Below, in pieces: positions 3,955-54,332 of a stretch of DNA of 64,000 nucleotides (position 1 is the stretch's first letter; every line of letters begins with the position of its first letter). Source of the DNA: Haliotis rufescens (lineage: Eukaryota); assembly GCF_023055435.1 (NCBI RefSeq), contig NW_025963879.1, forward strand, positions 24,924,001-24,988,000. The letters are read 5' to 3'. The translations under genes and the position numbers were made by a program. The notes under the pieces were generated by a model. It saw only the letters and a program-made list of their open reading frames with translations. It searched no databases and was not told the origin of the DNA.

Positions 3955-6341
3955 ATGGCGACCTCCCAGAAGCTAACAGAACACTTCCTGACATGCACGA
4001 TATGTACAGAGGTGTTTGACAAGCCCTGTACACTTGTATGTAATCACACCTTCTGTCGTAAATGTGTCGTCAACTACACCAAAACCAGACCAGAAGCCAT
4101 TAGTGCCAAGTCTCTCCTGTGTCCATTCTGCAGGAAGATGACGAAAGTGTCTGCCCCTGAGAGACCAGTGGAGGAGTGGGCGGATGACGTCAAGCCTAGC
4201 TTTGTCATCCAGGGACTTTTGGACTCGTTTGGCCCCGGATCTAAAGGTGAGCGTTTGTGGTTTGTATGAATATAAATGTTATTTCGAAGCAGGTAACTCC
4301 ACACCTGATTGGATAATAGGAATGTGTGTTGAGTGAGAAGATATTTTGTAAGGTTTCAAAATTTATCGAAAGTCATTTATTAAGTTGTGTTCGTGTACAC
4401 TGTTTTAACAAGTAACAACGATTATCCGGACATGATTCGAAAGGGAGATGGTCTAAGGTCTATCTCAGACACAATTGCCATTTTTCTCTGAAATCTATAT
4501 CTATATGGCGATTTCTATCAGTGAGACAAATCCAATGTTATTTACATAATTTTTCACATTACGTGGTATTGGGATGTTATTGATGCATGTTGTCTCACCC
4601 AAGTGAGTGATGTACATGATATGCCACATGAAGTTCTGTAATAGATTGTGATGTAGAACTGTTAATATCTCTTCATGATTACATTCCTATTTCAGATACG
4701 ACTCACTGTAGTTATTGTAAGGAGGAAGGGGAGACAACTCCAGCTACATCTTGGTGCTCTGTTTGTGACGACGCACTCTGTGAACGATGTATTCGAGTAC
4801 ACAGACGAATTCCATCTTTCCGTCACCATGACGTAGTTGACCTGTCTGGAGAGACAAAGGTTCGCGTCAAGAGAAAGGTCATGTGTAAACTTCACAAAGA
4901 TGAAAATATCAAATATATTTGTAAAGATTGTAAAACAGCAGTTTGTCAAAAATGCTGCACTATCCATCACAGGAAATGTGACTTGGTTGTTGAAATTGAG
5001 TCGGAGATTCCTTCCATGAAAACTGAGCTGAGAAGGAATAAAGAGGTATTGTTGAACAAACAAGACGAGATGAAAACACATATTGGTAAACAAACCTCCA
5101 AAGTCAATGAAGCATTAACGCTTTACTTACAAATAGAATCGAATATCAAATCTGCAAGTGTCAAAACAATTGAGGTGATCAAAGTCAAGGAACGGACACT
5201 TTTGGCTGAACTGAAAGAAATGTCTGACAAACACATTGGAGAACTGAAAGCAGACATAAAGTCAGGTGAGATGTCAGTACAGGTGTACCAACAACAGGCA
5301 GAGCTGATAGACCAGACTCTACAATCTGAGTGTGACATGGGTGTGTATGAGATGTACCAGGGATGTGAGGCCGTTGATGTGGAGGCTGTCGGAGTCGCAG
5401 ACGTGAAGGAGAAGGGAAGAATAGCCAGGATCATGTTCAGACAGGACACGGACAAGCTGAGTAGAGCACTGGACGATCTACAGCTGGGTGAGATAGACGT
5501 CCTGTATGAGGGTGTGCTGGACCTGAAGGCGACTCTTGTGGTACAGGACACCATTAACACCAGAGTAGCAGGGGATATGTTAAGAGAAGACATCTGTGAC
5601 GGGGTAGTGGTAGTGGTGAATGGTACAGACACAGTGGTAGTCACAGACATCTACAACAACAGTGTGAAGTCCTTCTACACCAGGAACAAGCAGCCGTGTC
5701 ACAGCAGGCTCAGTGTGGGTGGTAATCCGTATGGTATAACAAAGTTGAAGGACAACCAGGTGGCTTTCACTATGCTGGGTACCAGACAGATTGTAACAGT
5801 ACAAGTCAACCCTGACCTGGAGCTGCTGTCAACCATCACAACCAGCAAACAGTACTGGGGTATAACGTCTCTGACACCATCAACACTAGCAGCAAGTTCC
5901 CACTCCCCTCCCTGTGTTGATATCCTGGATATGGCGGGACACGTGCTGAGGTCAATTTGTCCAGGCCAACCTAGTAGATACATCTTGAAGTATCCCTTCT
6001 TCCTTTGTACCACGAGGACAGGAAACATCCTGGTGTGTGACAGTGGATCCACGTGTGTCGTGTGTCTGACTCCCGAGGGAGATGTGGTGTTCACATACAG
6101 CCCTACAGGAGACACAGCACTGAAGGATGCACTTGGTATCACAAGCACGAGCACAGGCGACATCCTGGTAGCAGACCAAACACTACACAGAGTCCTCCAT
6201 CTGACTGAGTCAGGACAATTTGTTAGAAACATACTGACATCACGGGATGGTGTCCAGAGTCCACGTGGAGTGTGTGTTGGTGGGCGTGGCCGCATGTACG
6301 TATGTACACCAGATGGAGTGAAGGTATTTACATGTAAGTGA
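3955..6341 (+). CDS. TRIM-NHL-like E3 ligase copy 1 (RING, B-box1, B-box2, coiled coil, NHL-like propeller), 645 aa
   Basis: Exons 3955-4246 and 4696-6341; phase-1 GT-AG intron (aaag|gtgagc ... tttcag|atacg). C3HC4 RING CTIC..CNHTFCRKC..CPFC; B-box1 CSYC..CSVCDDALCERC..H..H; B-box2 CKLH..CKDCKTAVCQKC..HH; NHL-type blades (PYGIT, GNILVCD, GDILVAD, PRGVCV). Confidence 0.93.
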
Positions 6342-8740: not shown

Positions 8741-9277
8741 AGAGCAGAGCAGCATCATCTGTTGTCCGGGGACTGGTCAAATGACGCATCTGAGTCTTCC
8801 CCAGAGGTCATCATTGTACTGTTACAGGATATGAGGGGGAGGAGCAGAGCAGCATCACCTATTCTCCGGGAACTGGTCAAATGACGCATCTGAGTCTTCC
8901 CCAGAGGTCATCATTGTACTGTTACATTATATGAGGGGGAGGAACAGAGCAGCATCACCTATTGTCCGGGGATTGGTCAAATGACGCATCTGAGTCTTCC
9001 CCAGAGGTCATCCTTGTACTGTTACAGGATATTGGGGGAGGAGCAGGGCAGTCCCACCTATTGTACGGGGACTGGTCAAATGACGCATCTGAGTCTTCCC
9101 CAGGGGTCAACATTGTACTGTTACAGGATATGAGGGGGAGGAGCAGAGCAGTACCACCTATTGTCCGGGGACTGGTCAAATGACGCATCTGAGTCTTCCC
9201 CAGGGGTCAACATTGTACTGTTACAGGATATGAGGGGGAGGAGCAGAGCAGTACCACCTATTATCCGGGGACTGGTA
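8741..9277. repeat. 100-bp satellite, ~5 units
   Basis: Same unit as 1-1512. Confidence 0.95.
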
Positions 9278-9387
9278 ATTGGCTTGTGGAGAAATCTAAC
9301 TCCCAAACATTTCTGAAATTTATGGGTCATCTTGATGCACATGTCAGACACCACGTCCCTTGTTTTCACGTGGGTCTCTTGAACCAT

Positions 9388-10080
9388 TACATCACGTAGC
9401 TCACCTTTGGTTACATAAATTAGCTTACCTTTGGTTACGTCAAGTAGCTCACCTTTGGTTACATGAATTAGCTTACCTTTGGTAACGCAAAGTGGCCCAC
9501 CTTTGGTTATATCACGTAGCTCACCTTTGGTTACATAAATTAGCTTACCTTTGGTTACGTCTAGTAGCTCCCCTTTGGTTACGTCACGTAGCTCACCTTT
9601 GGTTACATAAATGAGCTTACCTTTGGTAACGTCAAGTGGCCCACCTTTGGTAACATCACGTAGCTCACCTTTGGTTACATTCATTAGCTTACCTTGTGTT
9701 ACGTCAATAAGCTCACCTTTGGTTACATCACGTAGCTCACCATTGGTTACATACATAAGCTTACCTTTGGTTACGTCACGTAGCTCACCTTTGGTTACAT
9801 AAATGAGCTTACCTTTGATTACATCAAGTAGCCTACCATTGCTTTCATCACGTAGGTCACCTTTGGTTACATAAATTAGCTTACCTTTGGTAACGTCAAG
9901 TAGCCCACCTTTGGTTACATGAATTAGCTTACCTTTGGTAACGCCAAGTGGCCCACCTTTGGTAACATAAATGAGCTCACCTTTTGTCACATAAATTAGC
10001 TTACCTTTGATTACATCAAGTAGCCTACCATTGGTTTCATCCAGTAGCCTACCTGTGGTTACATAAATTAGCTTACTTAC
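9388..10080. repeat. 24-bp minisatellite with 48-bp dimer structure
   Basis: gttacatcacgtagctcacctttg alternates with gttacataaattagcttacctttg. Confidence 0.93.
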
Positions 10081-10779
10081 ATATAATTTAACATTCCGTT
10101 GTCTAATATGCATACGAGTAGTAGTAGTTGTAGTAGCAGTGGTGGTAGTAGTAGTAGTAGTCGTGGTATGCCATAAAGAGACCTGTTCAAGTCGCAAACA
10201 GAAGGTATAAAACATCCATAATAATGAGAGACATACGTCAGTAGTCAATCATATCATATCGCGTGCCAGTGAAGAGAACGAAGAAGAGGAAAAAAAATGA
10301 TTCTAGTTATGATGTGAGCTGAATTATCTGTCGTGTTGCAATCAGCTCATTAGATATTCCAGTTGTAAGGCTATTGCAGTCATGCAGTCGGGATGGAATA
10401 AGTGATCAAACGAGGCTGGCAGTATCATCTCAGGTGAGGAGATGGCGTATAGATCCAATGTGATGAGATGACAAATTATTATTATTATTCATAATGATTC
10501 AAGATGCAGTTTGGTTGCTTAGTAATGTACACGTATCTACATGTTTTATATCCGAGTGAGTGAATGCTGTTTAACACCACAGTCAGCAATATGCTACTTA
10601 TAGCACAACGACCTGTGAAGAAGTGTTGGGCTAAACAGTGCTTGGTGGCATCAGCAAAGAACCAGGTCTTCGGGCACGATGAAACAATCTCATCATGGGA
10701 TCTTGAAGAAGGTATGAACGAACACGTGACAGGTGACCTCACAGCGGTGTTTGCAATGACAAAGGACCATAAGAACTCA

Positions 10780-13326
10780 CTCTAATGCTTTAACCACCAA
10801 CACTGTTGCATAGAAGACCCACACTAATGCAACAGCAACCAACACTAATGCATCAGACACACACACTTATACATTAGCAACCAACACCAATGTATTAGCA
10901 ACCGACACTAATGCATTTATAACTCACACTTATGCATCAGTAACCCAAATTAATGCCTTAGCAACCCACACAAGTGCATAAGCAACCCACATTAATGCAT
11001 CAGCAGCCAAAACTAATGCATCAGCAACCCAAACTAATATATTAGCAACCAACACTAATACATTAGCAACCCACACTTATGTATTAGCAACCGACACTAA
11101 TGCACCAGCAACCAACACTAATGCATCAGCAACCCACACTAATTCATTTGCAACAAACCCTTATGCATTAGCAGCCCCCACTAATGCATCACCAACCCTA
11201 ACTAATACATTAACAACCGACACAGATGCATTATCAACCAACACTCATGCATCAGCAACCATGACTTATGCATCAGCAACCAAGACTTATGCTTAAGCAA
11301 CCCACACTAATGCATTGGCAACCCACACAAGTGCATTAGCAACCACACTAGTTCACCAGCAACCCAAACTAAAGCATCAGAAGCTCACACTAATGTATTA
11401 GGAACCCACACTTAAGCATCAGACACACACACTAATACATGAGCAACCAACACTCATGTATTAAAAGCCTACACTTAAGCATCAGGCACACACACTAATA
11501 CATTAGCAACCAACACAGATGCATTATCAACCCATACTAATGCACCAGCAACCCACACAAGTGCATAAGCAACCCACATTAATGCGTCAGCAGCCAAAAC
11601 TAATGCATCAGCAACCCAAACTAATATATTAGCAGACAACACTAATACATTAGCAACCCACACTTATGTATTAGCAACCAACACTAATGCATCAGCAACC
11701 CACACTTATTGATTAGCAACAAACCCTAATGCATTAGCAGCCCCCACTAATGCTTCACCAACCCTAACTAATACATTACCAACCAACACTGATGCATAAC
11801 AACCCACACCATTGCATCTGTAACCCACACAAATGCATTGGCAACCCACACAAGGGCATTAGCAACCACACTAATGCGCATCAGCAACTCACACTAATGC
11901 ATCAGACACCAACACTACTTCAGCAACCAACACTCATGCATAAGGAACCCACACTAAAGCATCAGGCACACACACTAATACATTAGCAACCAAAACTCAT
12001 GTATTAGGAGCCATCACTAAAGCATCAGGCACACACACTAATACATTAGCAACCAAAACTCATGTATTAGAAACCTACACTAAAGCATCAGGCACACACA
12101 CTAATATCTAGCAACCAACACTAATGCATTTATAGCCAACTATTATGCTTCAGTTAGCCAAACTAAAGCCTTAGCAACCCACGCAAGAGCATTAGCAGCC
12201 CACACTAATGCATCAGCAGCCAACACTAATGCATCAGCAACCCAAACTTATATATTAGCAACCAACACTAATACATTAGCAACCAGCACTTATGTATTAG
12301 CGACCGACACTTATGCATTAGCAGCAAACCCTAATGCATTAGCAACCCACACTAATGCATTAACAACCCACACTAATGTATCAGCGACCAATACAAATGC
12401 ATAAGGCACCAACACTAATACTTCAGTGAGTGAGTGAGTGAGTATGGTTTTCGATGGTCTTCGGCGTGACGAGCGGACGCTTTAACCACTAGGCTACCCG
12501 ACCGCCCCACTAATACTTCAGCAACCAACACTAATATATTAGGAACCCACACTAAAGCATCAGACACACACACTAATACATTTGCAACCAGCACTCATGT
12601 ATTAGGAACCCACACTAAAGCATCAGGCACACACACTAATACATTAGCAACCACAACTCATGTATTAGGAGCCTTCACTAAAGCATCACGCACAAACACT
12701 AATACATTAGCAACCAAAGCTCACGTATTAGGAGCCTTCACTAAAGCAGCAGGCACACCCACTAATACTTTACTAACCAACACTCATGCGTTAGCAACCC
12801 ACACTAAAGCATCAGGCACTAACACTGATACATTAGCAGCCAACACTCGCGCATTAGGAGCCTTCACTAAAGCACCAGGCGCACACACTAATACATTAAC
12901 AACCAACACTCATGCGTTAGGACTCACACTAATGCAGTAGACACACACTAATACATTAGCAACCAACACTCATATATAAGGAACCCACACTAAAGCATCA
13001 GACACACACACTTATACATTAGCAACCAAAACTCATCCATCAGCAGCCCACACTAAAGCATCAGACACACACACTTATACATTAGCAACCAAAACTCATG
13101 TATTAGGAACACACACTAAAGTATCAGACACACACACTAATACATTACCAACCAACACTCATCCATCAGCAGCCCACACTAAAGCATCAGACACACAGAC
13201 TTATACATTACCAACCAATACTCATGTATTAGGAATCCACACTAAAGCATCAGACACACACACCTATACATTAGCAACCAACACTCCTGTATTAGGAACC
13301 CACACTAAAGTATCAGGCACACACAT
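10780..13326. repeat. 21-bp satellite (cactaatgcattagcaacc[c/a]a), degenerate, with 42-bp dimers
   Basis: About 2.5 kb of 21-bp periodic sequence with palindromic core ctaatgcattag. Confidence 0.93.
12427..12507 (-). mobile_element. Internally deleted tRNA-derived SINE (ACTC-tail family A) inserted in the satellite
   Basis: SINE head gggcggtcgggtagcctagtggttaaag and (ACTC)n tail; 14-bp TSD cactaatacttcag at 12413-12426 and 12508-12521. Confidence 0.85.
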
Positions 13327-13573: not shown

Positions 13574-13583
13574 GGGAATTCCC
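13574..13583. promoter_or_regulatory. Palindromic NF-kB-type site GGGAATTCCC upstream of TRIM copy 2
   Basis: Exact GGGRNNYYCC consensus; homologous sites at 38817 and 58422. Confidence 0.5.
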
Positions 13584-15488: not shown

Positions 15489-17937
15489 ATGGCGACCTCC
15501 CAGAAGTTAACAGAACACTTCCTGACATGCACGATATGTACAGAGGTGTTTGACAAGCCCTGTACACTTGTATGTAATCACACCTTCTGTCGGAAATGTG
15601 TGGTCAGCTACACCAAAACCAGACCAGAAGCCATCAGTGCCAAGTCTCTCCTGTGTCCATTCTGCAGCAAGATGACGAAAGTGTCTGCCCCTGAGAGACC
15701 AGTGGAGGAGTGGGCAGATGACGTCAAGCCCAGCTTTGTCATCCAGGGACTCTTGGACTCGTTTGGCCCCGGATCTAAAGGTGAGAGTTTGTGGTTTGTA
15801 TGAATATAAATGTTATTTCGAAGCAGGTAACTCCACACCTGATTGGATTATAGGAATGTGTGTTGAGTGAGAAGATATTTTGTAAGGTTTCAAAATGTAT
15901 CGAAAGTCATTTATTAAGTTGTTTGTAGACTGTATGTAGACTATGAAATCGTATCGTGTACGCTGTTTTAACAAGTAACAACGATTATCCGGACATGATT
16001 CGAAAGGGAGATAGTCTAAGGCCTATCTCAGACACAATCGCTATTTTCTTCTGAAATCTATATGGGGATTTCTATCAGTGAGACAAATCCAATGTTATTT
16101 ACATACTTTTTCACATTACGTGGTATTGGGATGTTATTGATGCATGTTGTCTCACACGTGTGAGTGATATGCCACATGAAGTTCTGTAACAGATAGTGAT
16201 ATAGCACTGTTACTATCTCTACGTGATTACATTCCTATTTCAGATACGACTCACTGCAGTTATTGCAAGGAGGAAGGGGAGACAACTCCGGCTACATCTT
16301 GGTGCTCAATTTGTGACGACGCACTCTGTGAACGATGTATACGAGTACACAGACGAATTCCATCTTTCCGTCACCATGACGTAGTTGATATGTCTGGAGA
16401 GACAAAGGTTAGGGTCAAGAGAAAGGTCATGTGTAAAATTCACAAAGATGAAAGCATCAAATACATTTGTAAAGATTGTAAAACAGCTGTTTGTCAAAAA
16501 TGCTGCACTATCCATCACAGGAAATGTGACTTGGTTGTTGAAATTGAGTCGGAGATTCCTGCAATGAAAACCGAGCTGAGAAGGAATAAAGCGGATTTGT
16601 TGAAGAAACAGGACGAGATGAAAACACATGTTAAAAAACAAACCTCAAAAGTCAATGAAGAATTTACACTTTACTTACAAATAGAATCGAATATCAAGTC
16701 TGCAGGTCTCAAAGCAATAGAGATGATCAAAGTGAAGGAACGGAACCTTCTGGCTGAACTGAAAGCAATGTCTGACAGACACATTGGAGAACTGAAGGCA
16801 GACATAAAGTCAGTTGAGATGTCAGTACAGATGTACCAACAACAGGCAGAGCTGATAGACCAGACTCTACAATCTGAGTGTGACATGGGTGTGTATGAGA
16901 TGTACCAGGGATGTGAGGCCGTTGATGTGGAGGCTGTCGGAGTCGCAGACGTGAAGGAGAAGAGAAGAATAGCCAGGATCATGTTCAGACAGGACACGGA
17001 CAAGCTGAATAGAGCACTGGACGATCTACAGCTGGGTGAGATAGACGTCCTGTATGAGGATGTGCTGGACCTGAAGGTTACTCCTGTGTTACAGGACACC
17101 ATTAACCTGCTGGACCTGAAGGCTACTCCTGTGTTACCGGACACCATTAACGTCGGAGTAGCAGGAGATACATATGGAGCAAACCTCATGGACGTGAAGG
17201 TGTTAGTGGTGAATGGTACAGACACAGTGGTAATCACAGACATCATCAACAACAGTGTGAAGTCCTTCTACACCAGGAACAAGCAGCCAGGTCACAGCAG
17301 GCTCAGTCTGGGTGGTAGTCCGTATGGTATAACAAAGTTGAAGGACAACCAGGTGGCTGTCACTGTGCCGGATACCAGAGAGATTGTAACAGTACAAGTC
17401 AACCCTGACCTGGTGCTGCTGTCAGCCATCACAACCAGCAAACAGTACCGGGGTATAACGTCTCTGACACCATCAACACTAGCAGCAAGTTCCATCTCCC
17501 CTCCCTGTGTTGATATCCTGAATATGGCGGGACACGTGCTGAAGTCGATTCGTCCAGACCACCCTAGAAGAAACATCTTGAAGAATCCCAACTTCCTCTG
17601 TACCACGAGGACAGGAAACATCCTGGTGTGTGACCGGGGATCCAAGTGTGTCGTGTGTCTGACTCCCGAGGGAGATGAGGTGTTCACCTACAGCCCTACA
17701 GGAGACACAGCAATGGGGTGGCCACACGGTATCACAAGTACCAGCACAGGCGACATCCTGGTGACAGACAACCATCTACACAGAGTCCTCCATCTGACTG
17801 AGTCAGGACAATTTGTTAGAAACATACTGACATCACAGGATGCCGTCCAGAGTCCACGTGGAGTGTGTGTTGGTGGGCGTGGCCGCATGTACGTGTGTAC
17901 AGCATATGGCGTGCAGGTATTTACATGCTGTAAATGA
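15489..17937 (+). CDS. TRIM-NHL-like E3 ligase copy 2, 661 aa
   Basis: Exons 15489-15780 and 16244-17937; same phase-1 intron and domain motifs as copy 1. Confidence 0.93.
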
Positions 17938-19143: not shown

Positions 19144-19391
19144 GTGAACGAATATACACGTGAAGCCAGGAACATTTGATCATAGAACGCTGTTTATGTG
19201 TGTTGCAAATAAATTAATCCACTGTAATGCTATGTTTGTTGGTCAACACCGCGATATTTAAGCTGCATGTATATCTCGGTAAATAATCGAGAATGAACGC
19301 GAGAAAGCAGTGACTGACATCACGAGCAACATCCAAAGTTGCTGGGTCAAGAGGACACTGTATCAACCAGGTGACGGAGTCTGACCATTTG

Positions 19392-20490
19392 ACAGCAGCT
19401 AGGGTATAACTCCCATGTTGCCCAACAAACCCTTTGCCAGCAGCTCGGATGTAACTCCTTTGTTGCACAGTAAACTCCTTGCCAACAGCTAGGGTATAAC
19501 TCTCATGTTGCCCAATAAACCCCCTGCCAGCAGCTAGGGTGTAACTGCTTTGTTGCACAGTAAACTCCTTGCCAACAGCTAGGGTATAACTCTCATGTTG
19601 CCCAATAAACCCCTTGCCAGCAGCTCGGGTGTAAATCCTTTGTTGCACAGTAAACTCCTTGCCAACAGCTAGGGTATAACTCTCATGTTGCCCAATAAAC
19701 CCCTTGCCAGCAGCTGGGGTGTAACTCCTTTGTTGCACAGTAAACTCCTTGCCAACAGCTAGGGTATAACTCCCATGTTGCTCAATAAACCCCTTGCCAA
19801 CAGCTAGGGTATAACTCCCATGTTGCCAAATAACCCCTTGCCAGCAGCTCGGGTGTAAATCCTTTGTTGCACAGTAAACTCCTTGCCAACAGCTAGGGTA
19901 TAACTCCCATGTTGCCCAATAAACCCCTTGCCAGCAGCTGGGGTGTAACTCCTTTGTTGCACAGTAAACTCCTTGCCAACAGCTAGGGTATAACTCCCAT
20001 GTTGCCCAATAAACCCCTTGTCAGCAGCGAGGGTGTAACTCACATGTTGCCCAGGTAACCACTTGCCAGCAGCTGGGGTTTAACTCACATGTTGCCCAGG
20101 TAACCACTTGCCAGCAGCTGGGGTGTAACTCACATGTTGCCCAGGTAACCACTTGCCAGCAGCTGGGGTGTAACTAACATGTTGCCCAGGTAACCACTTG
20201 TCAGCAGTTGGGGTGTAACTCACATGTTGCCCAGGTAACCACTTGCCAGCAGCTGGGGTGTAACTCACATGTTGCCCAGGTAACCACTTGCCAGCAGCTG
20301 GGGTGTAACTTATATGTTGCCCAGGTAACCACTTGCCAGCAGCTGGGGTGTAACTCACATGTTGCCCAGGTAACCACTTGCCAGCAGCTGGGGTGTAACT
20401 TACATGTTGCCCAGGTAACCACTTGCCAGCAGCTAGGGTTTAACTCACATGTTGCCCAGGTAACCACTTGCCAGCAGCTGGGGTGTTGTC
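19392..20490. repeat. 45-bp minisatellite (90-bp dimer to ~20030, then monomer)
   Basis: Unit cagcagctggggtgtaactcacatgttgcccaggtaaccacttgc; the left part alternates two variants. Confidence 0.95.
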
Positions 20491-30208: not shown

Positions 30209-33200
30209 ATGGCGACCTCCCAGAAGTTAACAGAACACTTCCTGACATGCACGATATGTACAGAGGTGTTTGACAAGCCCTGTACACTTGTATGTAATCA
30301 CACCTTCTGTCGGAAATGTGTCGTCAGCTACACCAAAACCAGACCAGAAGCCATCAGTGCCAAGTCTCTCCTGTGTCCATTCTGCAGAAAGATGACGAAA
30401 GTGTCTGCCCCTGAGAGACCAGCGGAGGAGTGGGCGGATGATGTCAAGCCTATCTTTGTCATCCAGGGACTCTTGGACTCGTTTGGTCCCGGATCTAAAG
30501 GTGAGTGTTTGTGATCTGTACGAATATTAGTGTGGTTCCTAGGACAGAGTGAGTAAGTATGGTATACAGCCCTTTCAGCAATATACCCGCAATATTACGG
30601 GGAGGGACAACAGAAATGGGCTTCAAAGTGTGCTCATGTTCGGAATTGTCGTGACGAGCGAACGCCTTAACCACTACCCCTACATTTGATTTGAATATAG
30701 AAATACGTTATGTTTAAGGTTTCTGTGCTATATGGAAAGTCGTCTATAGGTTGTTTGTAGGGTTTGTGTATATCATGAAATCATATCATGTACAGGTACA
30801 GTTTTAACAAGTGGCAATGATCCTCCAAGCACGTTGAGCATGCTGAGTATAGGAACGTATGTGAAGTTAAGAAGAAAGTTTTCTGTTTCTTTTCTAACCC
30901 CGTTGATGATGTTGTTTTGAAGGTTTGCATACAAAATGAAATCCTATTGTAAACATGTGCTTAATGAGTAACATCGATATAATCTAAGGTGTATCGGGTA
31001 GCCTAGTGGTTATTCCCGAGATCAATTCCCGACATGGGTTCAATGTGTTAAGCCCTAGACTGGTTTACCTAATCAAGAGCGCTTGAGCTCTTCGCCTACA
31101 GCCCCTAGGAGTCGAAGGGCAAGGTACCTGTCTGGCTCAATTCGAACTATTTCCACAATACAGCATTTCGCTACCGTGAAACGTTGACCTATTTCCGTGA
31201 AGCGGTTCTGGCTGTCGAGAGGATCGGGGACAGGCCTACAGCGGGAAACGTTGACACTGTTTCAGTGTAGCGAGGTATTAGCACTTTTGTACAGAGTGAA
31301 TAATTTACATAACAAGCTACAGGAGTAAACATATCAGCATTAGGGAGGTAACTATTACAGAGAAGCTTAGTTCATTATTAAAAAAACCCAACACACTCAC
31401 AACAATTTTCACAATATCTGCATGTCTCCACTGATCGCCTTCATTATGAAATAAAAAAATGTAGCTGTTACTTTGAAATAATTCTCTCTGGTGTAGATAT
31501 CTCAATGTCAACAGTGCCTTGTATACTGCTATGCCTGTGTCAACTGAACGTCCCCAATGCTAGTTTTTTAACATACTATGTTTGTTTTCTACTTTTATTT
31601 AACATACATATTTAGACTGAAATGTGATCGCATTCATATTCCTGATTCTGGAGGACCACATGCAAATTACAATTTGTTTTACTTCTGGATTACACATGTG
31701 CGCTTTATGACAGTAAAGGTACTGCATCAATAGGTAGTTATGCTGCAACATTTCAATGCCCCGTGTTGATACTCTGGACCAAAGTTATATTGTTATTTCA
31801 GATACGACCGACTGCAGTTATTGCAGGGAGGAAGGGGAGACAACTCCAGCTACATCTTGGTGCTCTGTCTGTGATGACGCACTCTGTGAACGATGTTTAC
31901 GGATGCACAAACGAATCCCATCTACCAATCACCATGGCGTAGTTGACCTGTCAGGAGAGACAAAGATGAAGGTCAAAAGAAAGGTCATGTGTAAAGTTCA
32001 CAAGGATGAAAATATCAAATATATTTGTAAAGATTGTAAAACAGCTGTTTGTCAAACATGCTGCACTATCCATCACAGGAAATGTGACTTGGTTGTTGAA
32101 ATTGAGTCTGAGATTCCTTCCATGAAAACTGAGCTGAGAAGGAATAAAGAGGTATTGTTGAAGAAACAAGACGAGATGAAAACACATATTGGTAAACAAA
32201 CCTCCAAAGTCAATGAAGCATTAACGCTTTACTTACAAATAGAATCGAATATCAAATCTGCAAGTGTCAAAGCAATTGAGGTGATCAAAGTCAAGGAACG
32301 GACACTTTTGGCTGAACTGAAAGAAATGTCTGACCAACACATTGGAGAACTGAAGGCAGACATAAAGTCAGGTGAGATGTCAGTACAGATGTACCAACAA
32401 CAGGCAGAGCTGATAGACCAGACTCTACAATCTGAGTGTGACATGGGTGTGTATGAGATGTACCAGGGATGTGAGGCTGGTGATGTGGAGGCTGTCGGAG
32501 TCGCAGGCGTGAAGGAGAAGGGAAGAATAGCCTGGATCATGTTCAGACAGGACACGGACAAGCTTAGAAGAGCACTGGATGATCTACAGCTGGGTGAGAT
32601 AGACGTCCTGTATGAGGGTGTGCTGGACCTGAAGGCTACTCCTGTGTTACAGGACACCATTAACGTGCTGGACCTGAAGGCGACCTCTGTGTTACAGGAC
32701 ACCATTAACGTCAGACTAGCAGGTGATACATCTAGAGCAAACCTCATTGACGTGAAGGTGTTTGTGGTGAATGGTACAGACACAGTGGTAGTCACAGACA
32801 AGAACAACCACAGTGTGAAGTCCTTCTACACCAGGAACAAGCAGCACGGTCACAGCAGGCTCCGTGTAGGTAGTGTCCCGTATGGTATAACAACGTTGAA
32901 GGACAACCAGGTGGCTGTCACTGTGCCGGATACCAGACAGATTGTAACAGTACAAGTCAACCCTGGCCTAGTGCTGCTGTCAACCATCACAACCAGCAAA
33001 CAGTACTACGGTATAACGTCTCTGACACCATCAACACTAGCAGCAAGTTCCACCTCCCCTCCCTGTGTTGATATCCTGGATATGACGGGACACGTGCTGA
33101 AGTCAATTTGTTCAGGACAACCTATGAGATACATCTTGAAGAATTCCTACTTCCTCTGTACCACGAGGACAGGAAACATCCTGGTGTGTGACAGTGGATC

Positions 33201-33492
33201 CAAGTGTGTCGTGTGTCTGACTCCCGAGGGAGATGTGGTGTTCACCTACAGCACTACAGGAGACACAGCACTGAAGTTTCCACTTGGTATCACAAGTACC
33301 AGCACAGGCGACATTCTGGTGACAGACTGCCATCTACACAGAGTCCTCCATCTGACTGAGTCAGGACAGTTTGTAAGAAACATACTGACATCACAGGACG
33401 GTGTCCGGAGTCCACGTGGAGTTTGTGTTGGTGGGCGTGGCCGCATGTACGTGTGTACACCAGATGAAGTGAAGGTATTTACATTGAAGTGA
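30209..33492 (+). CDS. TRIM-NHL-like E3 ligase copy 3, 660 aa
   Basis: Exons 30209-30500 and 31802-33492; 1301-bp intron of a different lineage (contains a degenerate family A SINE at ~30547-30680). Confidence 0.93.
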
Positions 33493-38805: not shown

Positions 38806-38826
38806 GGGGAACCCCTGGGAATTCCC
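38806..38826. promoter_or_regulatory. Tandem NF-kB-type sites GGGGAACCCC-T-GGGAATTCCC
   Basis: Two adjacent kB-consensus decamers; homologs at 13563-13583, 49710-49730 and 58411-58431. Confidence 0.5.
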
Positions 38827-40989: not shown

Positions 40990-43465
40990 ATGGCGACCTC
41001 CCAGAAGTTAACAGAACACTTCCTGACATGCACGATATGTACAGAGGTTTTTGACAAGCCCTGTACACTTGTATGTAATCACACCTTCTGTCGGAAATGT
41101 GTGGTCAACTACACCAAAACCAGACCAGAAGCCATCAGTGCCAAGTCTCTCCTGTGTCCATTCTGCAGGAAGATGACGAAAGTGTCTGCCCCTGAAAGAC
41201 CAGTGGAGGAGTGGGCGGATGACGTCAAGCCTAGCTTTGTCATCCAGGGACTCTTGGACTCGTTTGGCCCCGGATCTAAAGGTGAGAGTTTGTGGTTTGT
41301 ATGAATATAAATGTTATTTCGAAGCAGGTAACTCCACACCTGATTGGATTATAGGAATGTGTGTTGAGTGAGAAGATATTTTGTATGGTTTCAAAATTTA
41401 TCGAAAGTCATTTATTAAGTTGTTTTTAGACTGTATGTAGACTATGAAATCGTATCGTGTACACTGTTTTAACAAGTAACAATGATTATCCGGACATGAT
41501 TCGAAAGGGAGATGGTCTAAGGTCTATCTCAGACACAATCGCTATTTTCTTCTGAAATCTATATGGGGATTTCTATCAGTGAGACAAATCCAATTATTTA
41601 CATACTTTTTCACATTACATCGTATTGGGATGTTATTGATGCATGTTGTCTCACCCGTGTGAGTGATATGCCACATGAACTGCTGTAATAGATAGTGATA
41701 TAGAACTGTTAATATCTCTACATGATTACATTCCTATTTCAGATACGGCTCACTGCAGTTATTGCAAGGAGGAAGGGGAGACAACTCCGGCTACATCTTG
41801 GTGCTCTGATTGTGACGACGCACTCTGTGAACTATGTATACGAGTACACAAACGAATTCCATCTTCCCGACACCATGACGTAGTTGACCTGTCTGGTGAG
41901 ACAAAGGTTAGGGTCAAGAGAAAGGTCATGTGTAAAATTCACAAAGATGAAAACATCAAATACATTTGTAAAGATTGTAAAACAGTTGTTTGTCAACAAT
42001 GCTGCACTATCCATCACAGAAAATGTGACTTGGTTGTTGAAATTGAGTCGGAGATTCCTGCAATAAAAACCGAGCTGAGAAGGAATAAAGAGGATTTGTT
42101 GAAGAAACAGGACGAGGTGAAAACACATGTTAAAAAACAAACCTCAAAAGTCAATGAAGAATTAACACTTTACGTACAAATAGAATCGAATATCAAGTCT
42201 GGAAGTCGCAAAGCAATAGAGATGATCAAATTCAAGGAACAGAACCTCCTGGCTGAACTGAAAGAGATGTCTGACAAACACATTCGAGAACTGAAGGCAG
42301 ACATAAAGTCAGTTGAGATGTCAGTACAGATGTACCAACAACAGGCTGAGCTGATAGACCAGACTCTACAATCTGAGTGTGACATGGGTGTGTATGAGAT
42401 GTACCAGGGATGTGAGGCCGGTGATGTGGAGGCTGTCGGAGTCTCATACGTGAAGGAGAAGGGAAGAATAGCCAGGATCATGTTCAGACAGGACACGGAC
42501 AAGCTGAGTAGAGCACTGGACGATCTACAGCTGGGTGAGATAGACGTCCTGTATGAGGATGTGCTGGACCTGAAGGCTACTCCTGTGTTACAGGACACCA
42601 TTAACGTGCTGGACAGGAAGGCTACTCCTGTGTTACAGGACACCACTAACGTGCTGGACCTGAAGGCTACTCCTGTGTTACAGGGCACCATTAACACCAG
42701 AGTAGCAGGAGATGTACGTCGAGCACACTCCACTGACGTGACGGTGTTAGTGGTGAATGGTACAGACACAATGGTAGTCACAGACTATAGGAACAACAGT
42801 GTGAAGTCCTTTTACACCAGGAACAAGCAGCCAGGTCACAACAGGCTCGTCCGTGGGGTATAACAGTGTTGAAAGACAACCAAGTGGCTGTCACTGTGCT
42901 GGACACCAGTCAGATTGTAACAGTACAAGTCAACCCTGACCTGGTGCTGCTGTCAACCATCACAACCAGCAAACAGTACTGGGGTATAACGTCTCTGACA
43001 CCATCAACACTAGCAGCAAGTTCTAACTCCCCTCCCTGTGTTGATATCCTGGATATGGCGGGACACGTGCAGAGGTCAAATTTTCCAGGCCAACCTAATA
43101 GATACTTCTTGATGAAACTCTCCTTCCTCTGTACCACGAGGACAGGAAACATCCTGGTGTCTGACGTGGGATCCAAGAGTGTCGTGTGTCTGACTCCCGA
43201 GGGAGATGAGGTGTTCACCTACAGCCCTACAGGAGACACAGAAATGGTGCATCCACGTGGTATCACAAGCACCAGCACAGGCGACATCCTGGTGACAGAC
43301 CTCAATCTTGACAGAGTCCTCCATCTGACTGAGGCAGGACAGTTTGTTAAAAACATACTGACATCACAGGACGGCGTCAAGCGTCCACATGGTGTGTGTG
43401 TTGGTGGGCGTGGCCGTATGTACGTGTGTTTGTCAGATACGGTGAAGGTATTTACATTGAAGTGA
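40990..43465 (+). pseudogene. TRIM-NHL-like copy 4, frameshifted (or a truncated 470-aa RBCC-only gene)
   Basis: Exon 40990-41281 and exon 2 from 41743. A 13-bp deletion (agtgtgggtggtc relative to copy 5) after 42848 gives TAA at 42861-42863. The rest of the propeller is open in another frame to 43465. Confidence 0.88.
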
Positions 43466-47009: not shown

Positions 47010-48131
47010 AGAGCAGAGCAGTACCACCTATTGTCCGGGGACTGGTCAAATGACGCATCTTAGTCCTCCCCAGAGGCCACCATTGTACTGTTACAGGATA
47101 TGAGGGGGAGGAGCAGAGACGTACCACCTATTGTCCGGGGACTGGTCAAATGACGCGCCTGAGTCTTCCCCAGAGGCCACCATTGTACTGTTACAGGATA
47201 TGAGGGGGAGGAGCAGAGCAGTACCACCTATTGTCCGGGGACTGGTCAAATGACGCGCCTGAGTCTTCCCCAGAGGCCACCATTGTACTGTTACAGGATA
47301 TGAGGGGGAGGAGCAGAGACGTACCACCTATTGTCCGGGGACTGGTCAAATGGCGCATCTGAGTCTTCCCCAGAGGTCATCATTGTACTGTTACAGGATA
47401 TGAGGGGGAGGAGCAGAGCAGTACCAGCTATTGTCCGGGGACTGGTAATTGGCCTGTGGAGGAATCTAACTCCCAAACATTTCTGAACATTATGGGTCCA
47501 CTTGATGCACATGTCTGACACCACGTTCCTTGTTTTCACGTGGGTCTCTTGAACCATTACATCAAGTATCTCAACTTTGGTAACATCAAGTATCTCAACT
47601 TTGGTAACATCAAGTATCTCAACTTTGGTAACATCAAGTAGCTTACCGTTGATTACGTCAAGTGGCCCAACTTTGGGTTACATCACGTAGCTCACCTTTG
47701 GTTACATAAATTAGCTTACCTTTGGTTACGTCAAGTAGCTCACCTTTGGTTAGATAAATAAGCTTACCTTTGGTAACTTCAAGTAACCCACCTTTGGTTA
47801 CATCACGTAGCTCACCTTTGGTTACATATATTAGCTTACCTTTGATTACATCAAGTAGCTTACCATTGGTTTCATCCAGTAGCGTACTTGTGGTTACATA
47901 AATTAGCTTACTTATATATACTTTAACATTCCGTTGTCTCATATGCATACGAGTAGTAGTAGTATGAGTGAGTGAGTTTAGTTTTACGCCGCTTTTAGCA
48001 ATATTTCAGCAATATCACAGCAGGGACACCAGAAATGGGCTTCATGTCGGGAATCGAACCCGGGTCTTCGGCGTGACGAGCAAACGCTTTAACCACTAGG
48101 CTACCCGACCGCCCCAGTAGCAGTAGTAGTG

Positions 48132-48168: not shown

Positions 48169-49195
48169 CAGTAGTAGTAGTAGTAGTAGAAGTCGTTGTA
48201 TGCCATAAAGAGACCTGTTCAAGTCGCATACAGAAGGTATAAAACATACATAATAATGAGAGAAATACGTCAGTAGTCAATCATATCATATCACGTGTCT
48301 TGAGCCAGTGAAGAGAACGAAGAAGAGGAAAAATAATTATTTTTTATGTTTTATATCCGAGCGAGTGAATGCTGTTTAACGCCACAGTCAGCAATATGCT
48401 ACTAAAAGCACAACGTGAAGAAGTGTTGGGCTAAACAGTGCTTGGTGGCATCAGCAAAGAACCAGGTCGTCGGGCACGATGAAACAATCTAAGCATGGGA
48501 TCTTGAAGAATGTATGAAAGAACACGTGACAGGTGAGCTCACAGCGGTGTTTCCAATGACAAAGGACCATAAGAACTCACTCTAATGCATTAACCACCAA
48601 CACTATTGCACAATCGACCCACACTTATGCATCAGTAACCAACACTAATGCATCAACAGCCAACACTTATACAACAGCAACCCACACTAATAATTCAGCA
48701 ACCAACACTAATGCATTAGGAACCCACACTAAAGCATCAGGCACCCACACTAATACATTAGCAACTAACACTCATGCGTTAGGAACCCACACTAAAACAT
48801 GATGCACATACACTAATACATTAGCAACCAACACTCATGCATTAGCAGCCCACACTAAAGCATCAGGCACCCACACTGATACATTAGCAACTAACACTAA
48901 TACTTTTACAACCCACACTGATGCATTAGCAACCAACACTTGTACATTAGCAACCCACACTAATACATTATCAACCCACACTAATACATTTCAACCCACA
49001 ATAATACATTTCAACCCACACTAATACATTATTAACCAACACTTATACATTATCAACCCACACTTATACATTAGCAAACCACACTAATACATGAGCAACC
49101 CACACTAATGCACCAGAAACCAACAGATGCATTAGCAACCCACAATTATGCATTAGCAACCTACACTAATGTATTAGCAACCCACACCAACCCAC
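47010..49195. repeat. Satellite cassette: 100-bp (~4 units), 24-bp array, (AGT)n, spacer, 21-bp array
   Basis: Same order as in unit 1. Confidence 0.88.
47966..48115 (-). mobile_element. tRNA-derived SINE family A inserted in the (AGT)n microsatellite
   Basis: Homologous to 18976-19143; empty site at ~10117-10165. Confidence 0.9.
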
Positions 49196-49270: not shown

Positions 49271-49295
49271 GGGGAATCCCCTTGTAGTGACGTCA
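49271..49295. promoter_or_regulatory. NF-kB plus CRE composite element upstream of copy 5
   Basis: GGGGAATCCCC at 49271-49281 and TGACGTCA at 49288-49295. Confidence 0.55.
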
Positions 49296-51886
49296 TATTC
49301 AAGAAGAACACGTATTCTCCTGTCATCACTGATTTTCAGTGGTCCATTCATCTGTAAATTCACTGCTATTTTGCCCTTTTAGCCAAATGGGATCTGATTA
49401 TTTAGACAGCTTATTCTCTTCTCTTCCATTGACAATTTACATTTGAAACATCAATTGTTTTAGTTACTTTAATTAGCAAAACATTTTGTAGTATTTATTT
49501 TGTTGTTAAACACTGATTGCAACTGTATTACATTGTTTCTGTTGACATTGCATGGAAAGAAAATAAAGTTTACACTATATACGTCTTTTCCTTTGGACAA
49601 GAGGTCGCTCACATGACGTTCATAACGACACAACTTGATATTCTTACGTTTTTCAGGAGACCGTATTCTTGAAATGACATAAACACCGACGGACTACTTA
49701 CACTTTCCTGGGAAACCCCTAGGAATTTCCTTACACGAATACATGAAAAAGCGTTGTTGCTGATTATTTAGACCCTTTATTCTTGAACTCAAACACTAAG
49801 CACACACTGAGAAAACGTCAGAGTGTTTGACTATCGTAGTATCGACTCGATCCGTGTCTAGACTGACAGCGACAGCCTACGGGAATCTATGGATTTACCT
49901 TTGCATCTTTATAAACATTTTTCAATGATCGATAATTGATAATTGATGATCAATATGTAACCGCCACAGGTTCATTGACAACTCGGAAATCTCTACCGTC
50001 ATACCCGTCACGTTTATCATCTTGTACTTAATGTAAATGTATTACACGCGCTGACATTCTGACTGACTTACTGAGGTAAGACCTTTCTCCTCTAAAGATG
50101 ATATTTTCTTTATGCATTTGTTTTTAGTAATTTTTTAATGTCACCACTGCCATCATATTTAATACTGCCATTAAATTTTGTACTACACTCTATTGCATAC
50201 TGACAATGTTATTTCTGTGCAGTAACTTTATTTATTGTATTTTTGATTGTATACCATTTGTTGGGTGTTTGTTGGTTTCACCCTAAATTCTGTTACGAAC
50301 TAATTTCTGGGTTAACATATTGTTTTAATATGGAAATCGATACGTATCAATATGTCAAAATCCTACATTGATGAGGAATGTTCATATGATAGATGGAGAA
50401 ACATCCTTGCTTATACAACATTGGTCTATCGTGCTACTGAATGGCAGCCAAGAGGTGGAAGGCATCAGTCAACTGTTTGAAGGTGCAAGTGGAAAGACAT
50501 GTGGCCAGTTTAATGTAATAAACTTGCTGTTCAGCGAAATAATTTTGTACTTACAACAGATGACATATAAAACTGCATCAAAGAACAGTTCTTGCAGCCA
50601 GCTGAGTGGTGCAACCATATTGTACATGTCGCATCAATTAAACATGCAATATAAAATAAATAACAAATAAAATAGTTTATATTTAATTCGAACTTTCTGG
50701 ACTTCTGCTGTGCTTATTTAACACGAATGATTTACTACACTGTATAAACTATGCTGCTTGCGTGTGGGATAACAGGTCGCTCTGATTCACTGCGGTGCTA
50801 CAGCGTGGGCCTGCTTTCAGAACCTCCACCTTAACACAGTCCTACCTGTTGTCGAAATCCACTTCTGGTTACACACGTGCATTCGTCACCACTCGACTCT
50901 TTCCGTAAACTGCGAGAAGCTTGTCCCGGAATGACACGAGTTGGTCACGAATGAATCACTTCCTGCTGCTCAATTTCCCTCAACACCAGGTAAGTGTGTG
51001 TTGTCACAAGGCCTGTGTCTACTTCAGTCATAACGCTACACACCTGTCCTACTGTGTACTGGTAACACCACAAGGGTTCATCTAACTATACAGTCATCTC
51101 CAGGCAGATTCTCATGACCGGGCACCTAATTAAATGTTACATGTAGGCTAACCGGAATACATCAAAGATCTACTTTCACTATTGCCTTCGATACTTGACT
51201 TCAATACTGAGACTGATCCGATGTATGTGTATGTATATATCACGTGTGTCTATTACAGTTATTACTGACATGATCCCTGACAAATGCTTCAGTAAACCAT
51301 ACGGGAAAATACTTCTACATAACTGTATTATTTCATATCTGATATGGTAGTATGTGAACCCTAATAATGTCTCATACTTTCGATATGGTAATGAGTGGGT
51401 GTCACCCCATAACTATGTCACGTGATTTATACACTGCACAATGTTCATGTTGTGAAGCCAGCGGGTGACCTCGAGTTGTAAAGCACCCTTCACTATCTGC
51501 TCACTGATCCCGGGTACACACAAACGGGTGAATGGGTAGCTATAAAGTACCTATTTATGCTTCCTGTACGACCGCCGAGAGTTGAGAAAATCACACACGC
51601 ATATACACGAGCACGCAAGCACGCAAGCACGCACGCACGCACGTGTAAGGCAGAATATTAGTTCTTAATTCATAAGATCTGCATACATCTGAAAAATGTT
51701 TTATATGACACGGGATATTTTAATTGTTTCAAGATCTGGATGATCCAGGCGATGAACGGTAGGATACAAATATTCTTTCTTAACTACAGTCGGTCTTAGT
51801 GTCACGAGTTCAAGAACTGTAAGCTCGGATTGTGGCTAAGATCATGTTGTTTTGTTCAGCGTCTGGTTTGTCTTTTTGTAGGTAAG

Positions 51887-54332
51887 ATGGCGACCTCCCA
51901 AAAGTTAACAGAACACTTCCTGACATGCACGATATGTACAGAGGTGTTTGACAAGCCCTGTACACTTGTATGTAATCACACCTTCTGTCGGAAATGTGTC
52001 GTCAACTACACCAAAACCAGACCAGAAGCCGTCAGTGCCAAGTCTCTCCTGTGTCCATTCTGCAGCAAGATGACGAAAGTGTCTTCCCCTGAGAGACCAG
52101 TGGAGGAGTGGGCGGATGACGTCAAGCCTATCTTTGTCATCCAGGGACTCTTGGACTCGTTTGGCCCCGGATCTAAAGGTGAGAGTTTGTGGTTTGTATG
52201 AATATAAATGTTATTTCGAAGCAGGTAACTCCACACCTGATTGGATTATAGGAATGTGTGTTGAGTGAGAAGATATTTTGTATGGTTTCAAAATGTATCG
52301 AAAGTCATTTATTAAGTTGTTTGTAGACTGTATGTAGACTATGAAATCGTATCGTGTACACTGTTTTAACAAGTAACAACGATTATCCGAACATGATTCG
52401 AAAGGGAGATAGTCTAAGGTCTATCTCAGACACAATCGCTATTTTCTTCTGAAATCTATATGGGGATTTCTATCAGTGAGACAAATCCAATGTTATTTAC
52501 ATACTTTTTCACATTACGTCGTATTGGGATGTTATTGATGCATGTTGTCTCACACGTGTGAGTGATATGCCACATGAAGTTCTGTAATAGATAGTGATAT
52601 AGAACTGTGACTATCTCTACATGATTACATTCCTATTTCAGATACGACTCACTGCAGTTATTGCAAGGAGGAAGGGGAGACAACTCCGGCTACATCTTGG
52701 TGCTCTGTTTGTGACGACGCACTCTGTGAACGATGTATACAAGTACACAGACGAATTCCATCTTTCCGTCACCATGACGTAGTTGATATGTCTGGAGAGA
52801 CAAAGGTTAGGGTCAAGAGAAAGGTCATGTGTAAAATTCACAAAGATGAAAACATCAAATACATTTGTAAAGATTGTAAAACAGCTGTTTGTCAAAAATG
52901 CTGCACAATCCATCACAGGAAATGTGACTTGGTTGTTGAAATTGAGTCGGAGATTCCTGCAATGAAAACCGAGCTGAGAAGGAATAAAGAGGATTTGTTG
53001 AAGAAACAAGACGAGATGAAAACACATGTTAAAAAACAAACCTCAAAAGTCAATGAAGAATTAACACTTTACTTACAAATAGAATCGAATATCAAGTCTG
53101 CAAGCCTCAAAGCAATAGAGATGATCAAAGTCAAGGAACAGAACCTTCTGGCTGAACTGAAAGCGATGTCTGACAGACACATTGGAGAACTGAAGGCAGA
53201 CATAAAGTCAGTTGAGATGTCAGTACAGATGTACCAACAACAGGCTGAGCTGATAGACCAGACTCTACAATCTGAGTGTGACATGGGTGTGTATGAGATG
53301 TACCAGGGATGTGAGGCCGGTGATGTGGAGGCTGTCGGAGTCGCAGACGTGAAAGAGAAGGGAAGAATAGCCAGGATCATGTTCAGACAGGACAAGGACA
53401 AGCTGAGTAGAGCACTGGACGATCTACAGCTGGGTGAGATAGACGTCCTGTATGAGGATGTGCTGGACCTGAAGGCTATTCCTGTGTTACAGGACACCAT
53501 TAACGTGCTGGACCTGAAGGCTACTCCTGTGTTACAGGACACCATTAACGTCAGAGTAGCAGGAGATACATATTGGACCAGCCCCATTGACGTGACGGTG
53601 TTTGTGGTGAATGGTAAAGACACAGTGGTAGTCACAGACTACAACAACAACAGTGTGAAGTCCTTCTATTCCAGGAACAAGCAGCAAGGTCACAGCAGAC
53701 TCAGTGTGGGTGGTCGTCCGTGGGGTATAACAAAGTTGACGGACAACCAGGTGGCTGTCACTGTGCCGTCAGCCACTCAGATTGTAACTGTGCAAGTCAA
53801 CCCTGACCTGGTGCTGCTGTCAGCCATCACAACCTGCAAACAGTACTGGGGTATAACGTCTCTGACACCATCAACACTAGCAGCAGGTTCCTACTCCCAT
53901 CCCTGTGTTGATATCCTGGGTATGACGGGACACGTGCTGAGGTCAATTTGTCAAGGCCAACCTAGTAGATACATCTTGAAGAAACCCTCCTTCCTCTGTA
54001 CCACGAGGACAGGAAACATCCTGGTGTGTGACCGGGGATCCGAGTGTGTCGCGTGTCTGACTCCCGAGGGAGATGTGGTGTTCACCTACAGCCCTACAGG
54101 AGACACAGCCCTGAAGTATCCATACGGTATCACAAGTACCAGCACAGGCGAGATCCTGGTGACAGACAGCCATCTACAAAGAGTCATCCATCTGACTGAG
54201 TCAGGACAGTTTGTTAGACACATGCTGACATCACAGGATGGTGTCAAGTATCCACGTGGAGTGTGTGTTGGTGGGCGTGGTCGTATGTACGTGTGTATGT
54301 CAGATGAAGTGAAGGTATTTACATATAAGTGA
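51887..54332 (+). CDS. TRIM-NHL-like E3 ligase copy 5, 660 aa
   Basis: Exons 51887-52178 and 52642-54332; intact frame and motifs. Confidence 0.93.

Follow-up and report, generated by a model that had tools for sequence, protein, structure and literature searches.

Diversifying selection on one face of the NHL propeller in a tandem TRIM-NHL array of the abalone Haliotis rufescens: a candidate repertoire of recognition ligases

TRIM5alpha and TRIM22 of mammals, and the finTRIM/btr proteins of teleost fish (all class IV TRIMs), carry a C-terminal B30.2/PRY-SPRY recognition domain on an E3 ubiquitin ligase chassis of RING, B-box and coiled coil that is held under purifying selection, and they have multiplied by lineage-specific tandem expansion; in the finTRIMs, positive selection has been located in surface loops of the recognition domain (PMC2657112). 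Here we describe an array of tandem TRIM-NHL genes in a 64,000-nt stretch of the genome of the red abalone, Haliotis rufescens (G000:C101:24924001-24988000; hereafter, the window), which shares these features and in which one face of the C-terminal domain is under diversifying selection. The module in the abalone family differs, being a six-bladed NHL beta-propeller and not B30.2, and the genes are those of a gastropod mollusc. For TRIM5 and finTRIM, antiviral function and interferon-type induction have been shown.

The same propeller fold (template modelling [TM] score 0.81-0.85) and the tripartite motif are found in Brat, LIN-41/TRIM71, Mei-P26, NHL-2, TRIM2, TRIM3 and TRIM32/Thin. In canonical TRIM-NHL proteins, as presumably in the abalone family, the d-a and b-c loops build the ligand-binding face (PMC4015489; PMC9634614); these loops define the top surface of an NHL propeller, a surface with which Brat binds RNA (PMC4015489) and which is a putative site of interaction in TRIM2/3/71 (PMC9634614). 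However, the canonical proteins are conserved regulators with developmental or neuronal roles that occur as single copies; their RNA-binding face is electropositive, and most have a filamin domain (a filamin/Ig domain is present in TRIM2, TRIM3 and TRIM71, and absent in TRIM32/Thin), whereas the abalone family has at least 85 copies, a linker of 15-residue repeats without filamin, and a hypervariable face of variable charge. Its NHL domains are ~15-20% identical to those of solved structure.

Parallels exist outside the TRIM proteins and elsewhere among molluscs. The F-box and MATH-BTB adaptor families of nematodes and plants are said, in work by Thomas from 2006, to be positively selected, and were reportedly proposed to target pathogen proteins for degradation. 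They resemble the abalone family in joining a constant ligase-docking module to a diversifying substrate domain, in their large tandem arrays and in their birth-and-death turnover; unlike these cullin adaptors, the abalone proteins combine E3 (RING) and receptor in one polypeptide and use a different domain pair. In the oyster Crassostrea gigas, ten TRIM genes are among the loci associated with survival of ostreid herpesvirus 1 (OsHV-1; PMC9437489). Bivalve TRIMs thus resemble the abalone genes as multi-copy molluscan families, with a statistical link to viral disease outcome; that work does not resolve domain type, structure or site-wise selection (PMC9437489). The parallel is distant and indirect. 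For Aplysia, only 22 TRIM genes were reported (PMC9334734). The Mercenaria genome paper has no TRIM content, and literature searches returned no description of hypervariable NHL faces or of the abalone family. There is precedent for the principle of a TRIM protein whose C-terminal receptor diversifies; what is new is the fold, the phylum and a paratope-like face of twelve loops.

The window holds five tandem two-exon genes, all on the + strand, which recur with a period of 10.8-14.7 kb (n=5; repeat analysis of the window). In every copy, exon 1 (292 nt) opens with ATG, closes at a phase-1 GT donor and encodes a C3HC4 RING, and exon 2, a single large exon of 1.65-1.72 kb directly after a TTTCAG acceptor, encodes two B-boxes, a stretch without a Pfam match, and NHL repeats. 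A first-pass annotation of this DNA had described a five-copy array; the five tandem genes are there, and copies 1, 2, 3 and 5 are intact, but copy 4 is a pseudogene, in which a 13-nt deletion between 42848 and 42849, within the d-a loop joining blade 1 and blade 2, shifts the frame and leads to a stop at 42861-42863. Both exons of copy 5, compared exon by exon, match the RefSeq 'protein wech-like' P0001 (660 aa) exactly, and for several copies the exon models agree exactly with the RefSeq models. Searches and structure predictions were run on the exons one by one.

Pfam and AlphaFold2 (AF2) resolve the ligase half in some detail. Exon 1 of copy 5 matches zf-RING_UBOX, zf-C3HC4, zf-C3HC4_4 and zf-RING_2 above their cut-offs, and all eight zinc ligands are retained in the 10 copies compared. 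Exon 2 contains an ANCHR-like B-box at residues 4-45 and a zf-B_box at 60-92, both above cut-off, with Cys and His columns that are nearly invariant in the paralog alignment. Modelled by AF2, the first 295 residues encoded by exon 2 comprise two small zinc-finger modules, then helices and finally a disordered repeat linker; the coiled coil is one continuous helix at residues 100-209 (block-mean predicted local distance difference test score [pLDDT] ~86-95), with shorter helices after it. On these predictions the tripartite motif of RING, two B-boxes and coiled coil is complete.

The C-terminal 267 residues of copy 5, modelled by AF2 from a 55-row homologue alignment, form an NHL propeller of 24 strands in six four-stranded blades (mean pLDDT 96.2, predicted TM score 0.93). 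In Foldseek, the structures closest to it are all NHL domains, those of Drosophila Thin, human TRIM2 and TRIM3, zebrafish LIN41, and Brat, with TM scores of 0.76-0.85 overall at 15-20% identity, the Thin, TRIM2, TRIM3 and LIN41 domains scoring 0.81-0.85. Pfam gave no filamin match in the copy proteins, and the corresponding interval is a disordered 15-residue repeat in 1-3 copies, so that the architecture is TRIM32/Thin-like and not TRIM2/3/71-like. No SPRY or PRY match was found either, the C-terminal domain being NHL by both Pfam and Foldseek; the family is therefore not a member of the TRIM5alpha/finTRIM group and would be a functional analogue only.

The linker between coiled coil and propeller is a 45-nt (15-aa) in-frame tandem repeat, disordered in the AF2 model (pLDDT ~40), and its repeat number varies from one in copy 1 to two in copies 2, 3 and 5 and three in copy 4. 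How far the propeller reaches from the coiled-coil scaffold may depend on this number.

Variation was examined in 17 close paralogs, all distinct and intact and the four intact window copies among them, whose codon alignment has almost no indels within the propeller. Residues were classed by strand order (DSSP of the AF2 model) into strands a-d, top loops (d-a and b-c) and bottom loops (a-b and c-d), and strand residues were allotted to the nearer half, top or bottom; this assignment is topological and not taken from measured three-dimensional positions, and the loop classes were fixed in advance from the structure model, independently of variability. Of 145 positions in the top half, 42 show at least four amino-acid states, as do 2 of 110 in the bottom half (Fisher p=7.5e-10). 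Across the 17 genes, the number of alleles per loop is 7-14 on the top face and 1-5 on the bottom, and the top face is unique to each gene, no two being alike. The variable strings listed in the first-pass annotation were all recovered from the copy translations (for example, MLREDIC/TYGANLM/TSRANLI/VRRAHST/TYWTSPI and NPY/SPY/VPY/-/RPW), as were the codons CAC, ATC, ACC and TAC at propeller residue 122 in copies 1, 2, 3 and 5. Its proposal that the variable sites lie together on one face also stood: neither these nor the selected sites described below are scattered over the structure, and both cluster at the d-a and b-c loops, together with the strand ends next to them.

Selection was estimated without a tree, by pairwise Nei-Gojobori counts with bootstrap 95% confidence intervals (CI), and by maximum likelihood (ML), with MG94 fits per structural class. 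In the pairwise estimates, the RING exon is near-invariant (nonsynonymous divergence dN 0.018), with a ratio of dN to synonymous divergence dS (omega) of 0.23; the ratio is 0.23 for the B-boxes, 0.54 for the coiled coil and 1.15 for the whole NHL propeller. The first-pass claims of a RING and ubiquitin-ligase half constant across copies, and of diversifying selection at the variable loops, are borne out. In the top loops, dN is 0.248 and dS 0.168, giving an omega of 1.48 (CI 1.09-2.14); the top half reaches 1.48 (CI 1.13-2.02), as against 0.55 (CI 0.35-0.91) for the bottom half and 0.43 for the bottom loops. ML agrees, with omega at 1.63 in the top loops (p=0.0004 against omega=1), 2.25 in the b-c loops alone, 1.69 in the top half (p=3.5e-6) and 0.60 in the bottom half (p=0.0035). 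Although equally exposed, the bottom-face loops stay at 0.43-0.52. Strands as a class have an omega near 1, because their top-face ends are variable.

Site models gave the same picture. These were our own implementation of M1a and M2a, with branch lengths fixed up to a scale factor and omegas and weights fitted on a grid by expectation-maximization; our own FUBAR-like posterior has a rather flat prior, and the class-level and M2a results were relied on instead. For the NHL domain, M2a improves on M1a with a likelihood ratio test (LRT) statistic of 248 and assigns an omega of ~5 to 20% of sites; the B-boxes have an LRT of 0 and the coiled coil one of 14.9, with 0.9% of its sites in the positive class. 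Of the 29 NHL sites with a posterior above 0.95, the top half holds 26 and the bottom half 2, the remaining one being at the C-terminus (Fisher p=2.3e-5); 21 of the 29 are in top loops and 5 at the start of strand a. The selected sites are rich in Tyr (13.7% vs 2.3%, 5.9-fold) and Trp (4.5% vs 0.1%, 58-fold), and Asn and His are also enriched. Within the window, all six pairs of intact copies have a higher proportion of nonsynonymous (pN 0.134-0.182) than of synonymous differences (pS 0.086-0.141) in the top half, with a pN of 0.034-0.062 in the bottom half. In five other clusters of the family, on contig C79, top-loop omega exceeds bottom-half omega in 5/5, and in the two youngest it is 1.88 and 2.96, with confidence intervals that exclude 1. 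Thus, the RING, B-boxes, coiled coil and propeller framework, bottom face included, are under purifying selection, and the d-a and b-c loops of the top face are under diversifying selection.

The array belongs to a much larger set of genes. Exon 2 of copy 5, searched in six frames against the 1.33-Gb assembly, yielded 896 first-look candidates, of which 85 were matches at E<=1e-20, and the family thus has at least 85 copies. Some 30 close copies (78-100% identity) are found on the contig of the window, at 23.83-25.24 Mb, and further clusters lie on contig C79, at 64-71% identity, and on C13, at ~49%. Nine database relatives were examined, down to ~36% NHL identity, and all are from Haliotis; a land snail sequence follows at 34%. 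As far as these relatives go, the family appears to be restricted to one gastropod genus, and judging from the sequence matches, the array forms one portion of a large family of TRIM-type E3 ubiquitin ligases that is specific to Haliotis and has multiplied by tandem duplication. Among the database relatives, P0012 (H. rufescens, 783 aa) also has an RRM, and P0027 and P0096 (H. rubra) an Arf/small-GTPase domain; these additions may be either real fusions or merged gene models.

About 12 of the ~30 close copies are broken, four by in-frame stops and eight by being split between frames. Such decay would suit an account in which constraint has been relaxed in a redundant family, with loops that tolerate change as the genes drift towards pseudogenes: ~40% of the close copies are broken, copy 4 and a relic sixth RING exon among them, and surface loops are generally the least constrained part of a propeller. 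Relaxation, however, moves omega to 1 and not beyond, and the top loops are at 1.48-1.63 with a site class at ~5, the equally exposed bottom loops are at 0.43-0.52, the RING, B-boxes and bottom half of the propeller remain under purifying selection in the same genes, and the Tyr/Trp-rich selected sites are strongly non-random. We regard relaxed constraint as a very improbable explanation of the pattern. New genes arise by tandem duplication, paralogs swap sequence through recombination or gene conversion, and many copies end as pseudogenes. A constant half, a selected and gene-specific top face, turnover by birth, exchange and death, and apparent restriction to a single genus are hallmarks of genetic-conflict families.

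Taken together, the array probably represents a germline repertoire of cytosolic recognition and effector TRIM-NHL ligases, which would meet fast-changing ligands on a diversified top face. We infer an immune or genetic-conflict role, which may be that of a cytosolic sensor in a host-pathogen arms race. The top face of each paralog would bind a different, fast-changing ligand, most probably a viral protein or RNA, or one from an intracellular pathogen or selfish genetic element. As in other TRIMs, RING domains would be drawn together along the coiled-coil scaffold once the ligand is bound, and the bound target would then be ubiquitinated, or a signal triggered, in a RING-dependent manner. The family would thus be an analogue of TRIM5alpha and the finTRIMs in which the NHL propeller replaces B30.2/SPRY.

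Several observations weigh against a recognition repertoire of this kind, and some of them favour other explanations. Class-level omega is just ~1.5-1.7, and in three of the C79 clusters top-loop omega is ~0.8-1.1, with dS at 0.25-0.33 in two of these. The very recent pair L016/L018 has almost no NHL change, and diversification is therefore not instantaneous after duplication. The window has no match to an interferon-stimulated response element (ISRE)-like motif. Canonical TRIM-NHL proteins are developmental RNA regulators, not immune receptors. The paralogs recombine, with the pairwise homoplasy index (PHI) significant at p<0.001 for exon 2, for the NHL part and for the N-terminal part, and recombination inflates site-model tests. 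Finally, dS is ~2x higher in the top loops (0.168 vs 0.08; ML relative synonymous rate 1.6 vs 0.7-0.8), and part of the top-loop excess could be mutational, or reflect older coalescence of the loops.

The sequence exchange among paralogs, which the first-pass annotation had not raised, bears directly on the site models, in which homoplasy brought about by gene conversion in mosaic genes could be misread as repeated nonsynonymous change. Besides the PHI results, the N-terminal and NHL topologies differ, copies 2 and 5 being sisters with 100% support in the N-terminal tree only, and dS is uneven along the gene. We relied on the pairwise estimates, per-third trees and the C79 replication because recombination can inflate site-model tests. 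The tree-free dN/dS values concur with the site models; thirds of the NHL domain, each on its own tree, give M2a LRT values of 72.8, 72.3 and 41.7; the B-box partition, which lies in the same recombining array, has an LRT of 0; the excess of top over bottom recurs in 5/5 other clusters; and PHI loses significance when confined to the third codon positions of NHL (p=0.11). A conversion artefact as the source of the signal is accordingly very improbable, in our judgement slightly more so than relaxed constraint. Exchange among paralogs confounds the site models and may also contribute to the diversity.

The raised synonymous rate would also be expected if the loop-coding segments were local mutational hot spots, targets of mutagenesis or sites of multi-nucleotide mutation, and many selected codons do differ at two positions. 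A higher mutation rate alone, however, leaves omega unchanged, and omega is above 1 on the top face and below 1 on the bottom; the amino-acid outcome is biased to Tyr and Trp, and the loops showed no repeat or motif that could target mutation. Retention of old loop variants, with conversion homogenising the framework, would raise dS just as well, and the top-loop values would fit this. It is possible that local mutation or multi-nucleotide changes contribute to top-loop divergence, and that they account for the whole pattern is extremely doubtful. In the same 17 paralogs, dS of the B-box segment is 0.22, whereas the coiled coil, RING exon and propeller framework, at 0.08-0.09, have less than half this value, which suggests that gene conversion homogenises some gene segments more than others. 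Non-coding divergence was dropped as a neutral yardstick, the five-unit alignment being too indel-ridden in intron and flanks; its well-aligned non-coding blocks are ~85-95% identical and the NHL-coding part 83-94%, figures for qualitative use only.

A further rival is endogenous regulatory diversification, in which RNA-binding TRIM-NHL paralogs resembling Brat, LIN-41 and Mei-P26 would each have come to recognise other transcripts, of the host or of transposons, and not exogenous pathogens, with roles such as germline or transposon control. The NHL top face binds RNA in Brat (PMC4015489) and in LIN41 (PMC5908797), and the genome around the array is repeat-rich. By residue counts, the top loops are net positive on average, with a mean charge of +2.7 against -0.8 for the bottom loops, and the aromatic residues at the selected sites could stack on bases. 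The top-loop charge nevertheless runs from -4 to +6 between paralogs, with Arg (0.95x) and Lys (1.37x) not enriched at the selected sites, whereas RNA-binding faces are uniformly electropositive, and stable host targets would yield purifying selection, not omega above 1. A form of the regulatory account that targets transposons would still be genetic conflict and overlaps the reading favoured here. We consider regulatory diversification rather unlikely. The lack of Arg/Lys enrichment and the variable charge also argue, weakly, for protein ligands over RNA. A bolder form of the recognition repertoire is put forward more tentatively, and we would sooner doubt it than rely on it: the genome would encode some ~100+ cytosolic 'propeller antibodies', each with a Tyr/Trp-rich top paratope of twelve hypervariable loops, selected and reshuffled by gene conversion, and each ligase would ubiquitinate a different viral, bacterial-effector or transposon product.

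Features of the window are collected in Table 1. The RefSeq model of copy 2 (P0004) is identical to ours except that its last 6 residues are swapped for a 20-residue tail (window 17915-17937). Read from the sequence, this tail points to an additional 3' splice in the annotation, by which the last propeller strand would lose its end; such a splice hints at transcript evidence and is no proof of expression. The copy 3 intron (30501-31801) is 1301 nt long, as against ~450-465 nt in the other copies, with ~840 nt inserted, and several paralogs elsewhere on the contig also have introns of >1.4 kb. A run of 148 N at 3531-3678 lies just upstream of the copy 1 RING exon. No second exon was found for the relic RING exon, a search of the window with the acceptor pattern being empty after 52636, and in the genome search the next family match on the contig after copy 5 exon 2 lies past the window end.

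The rest of the window consists of satellites of 21/63, 24, 45 and 100 nt and unique spacer. Each intergenic spacer has the same satellite set in the same order, with array lengths that are very different between units. Long open reading frames at 9121-10248(-) and 19214-19738(-) were rejected as genes, being mere translations of satellite repeats. Upstream of copies 2, 4 and 5, at 1.9-2.6 kb from their RING exons, kappaB-like palindromes (GGGAATTCCC, GGGGAATCCCC) occur in unique DNA immediately 3' of the 21/63-nt satellite, one of them beside a cAMP response element (CRE)-like site, TGACGTCA. The kappaB-like matches number 20 against 2.5 expected, a count in which palindromes are counted twice, and because the sites are paralogous copies they are not independent evidence; Rel/NF-kappaB-type regulation of the array is only a lead.

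Table 1. Coordinates of genes, domains, loops and repeats in the window
Feature	Position	Strand	Details
Copy 1 exon 1	3955..4246	+	RING, 97 codons + 1 base, phase-1 donor
Copy 1 exon 2	4696..6341	+	B-box1, B-box2, coiled coil, one linker repeat, NHL 5538-6338; intact
Copy 2 exon 1	15489..15780	+	RING
Copy 2 exon 2	16244..17937	+	two linker repeats, NHL 17134-17934; intact
Copy 3 exon 1	30209..30500	+	RING
Copy 3 exon 2	31802..33492	+	NHL 32689-33489; intact
Copy 4 exon 1	40990..41281	+	RING; intact
Copy 4 exon 2	41743..43465	+	pseudogene; three linker repeats at 42561-42695
Copy 5 exon 1	51887..52178	+	RING; ligands C14, C17, C29, H31, C34, C37, C56, C59
Copy 5 exon 2	52642..54332	+	intact
Copy 5 NHL six-bladed propeller	53529..54329	+	267 aa; structural reference (AF2, Foldseek)
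Copy 5 d-a loop joining blade 6 to blade 1	53550..53582	+	hypervariable; 12 alleles in 17 paralogs
Other copy 5 top loops, first five	53640-53651, 53706-53726, 53766-53777, 53832-53843, 53892-53903	+	
Other copy 5 top loops, remaining six	53952-53984, 54033-54044, 54090-54119, 54168-54179, 54228-54260, 54297-54305	+	
Linker repeats	42561-42695; approx. 5460-5540, 17040-17135, 32600-32690, 53440-53530	+	
B-box segment, window copies	4696-5000, 16244-16550, 31802-32100, 52642-52950	+	
Relic sixth RING exon	62883..63064	+	182 nt vs 292, premature stop
100-nt satellite	1-1513, 8742-9276, 36776-37005, 47011-47446, 57105-57340		
24-nt satellite	9387-10073, 47557-47908		
21/63-nt satellite	10774-13325, 27026-27428, 37174-38279, 48574-49187, 57549-58056		
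45-nt satellite	19389-20486		
kappaB-like sites	13574-13583, 38363-38373, 38806-38826, 49271-49281, 49710-49719, 58411-58431		

Molluscs are not known to have adaptive immunity or a canonical interferon system. Abalone suffer severe herpesvirus disease and the intracellular bacterial withering syndrome, and the family described here is a concrete candidate for specific intracellular pathogen recognition or restriction in a lophotrochozoan. If this is true, the TRIM5/finTRIM principle would have arisen independently on a different fold, and the NHL propeller, so far a conserved developmental module for binding RNA and protein, would be extended to a variable recognition scaffold. A face of twelve Tyr/Trp-rich loops on a very stable scaffold may interest binder engineers, and designed 'Pizza' propellers are among the propeller's sequence- and fold-search matches. 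'Propeller antibodies', if they exist, would constitute an invertebrate intracellular recognition system not described before for NHL domains.

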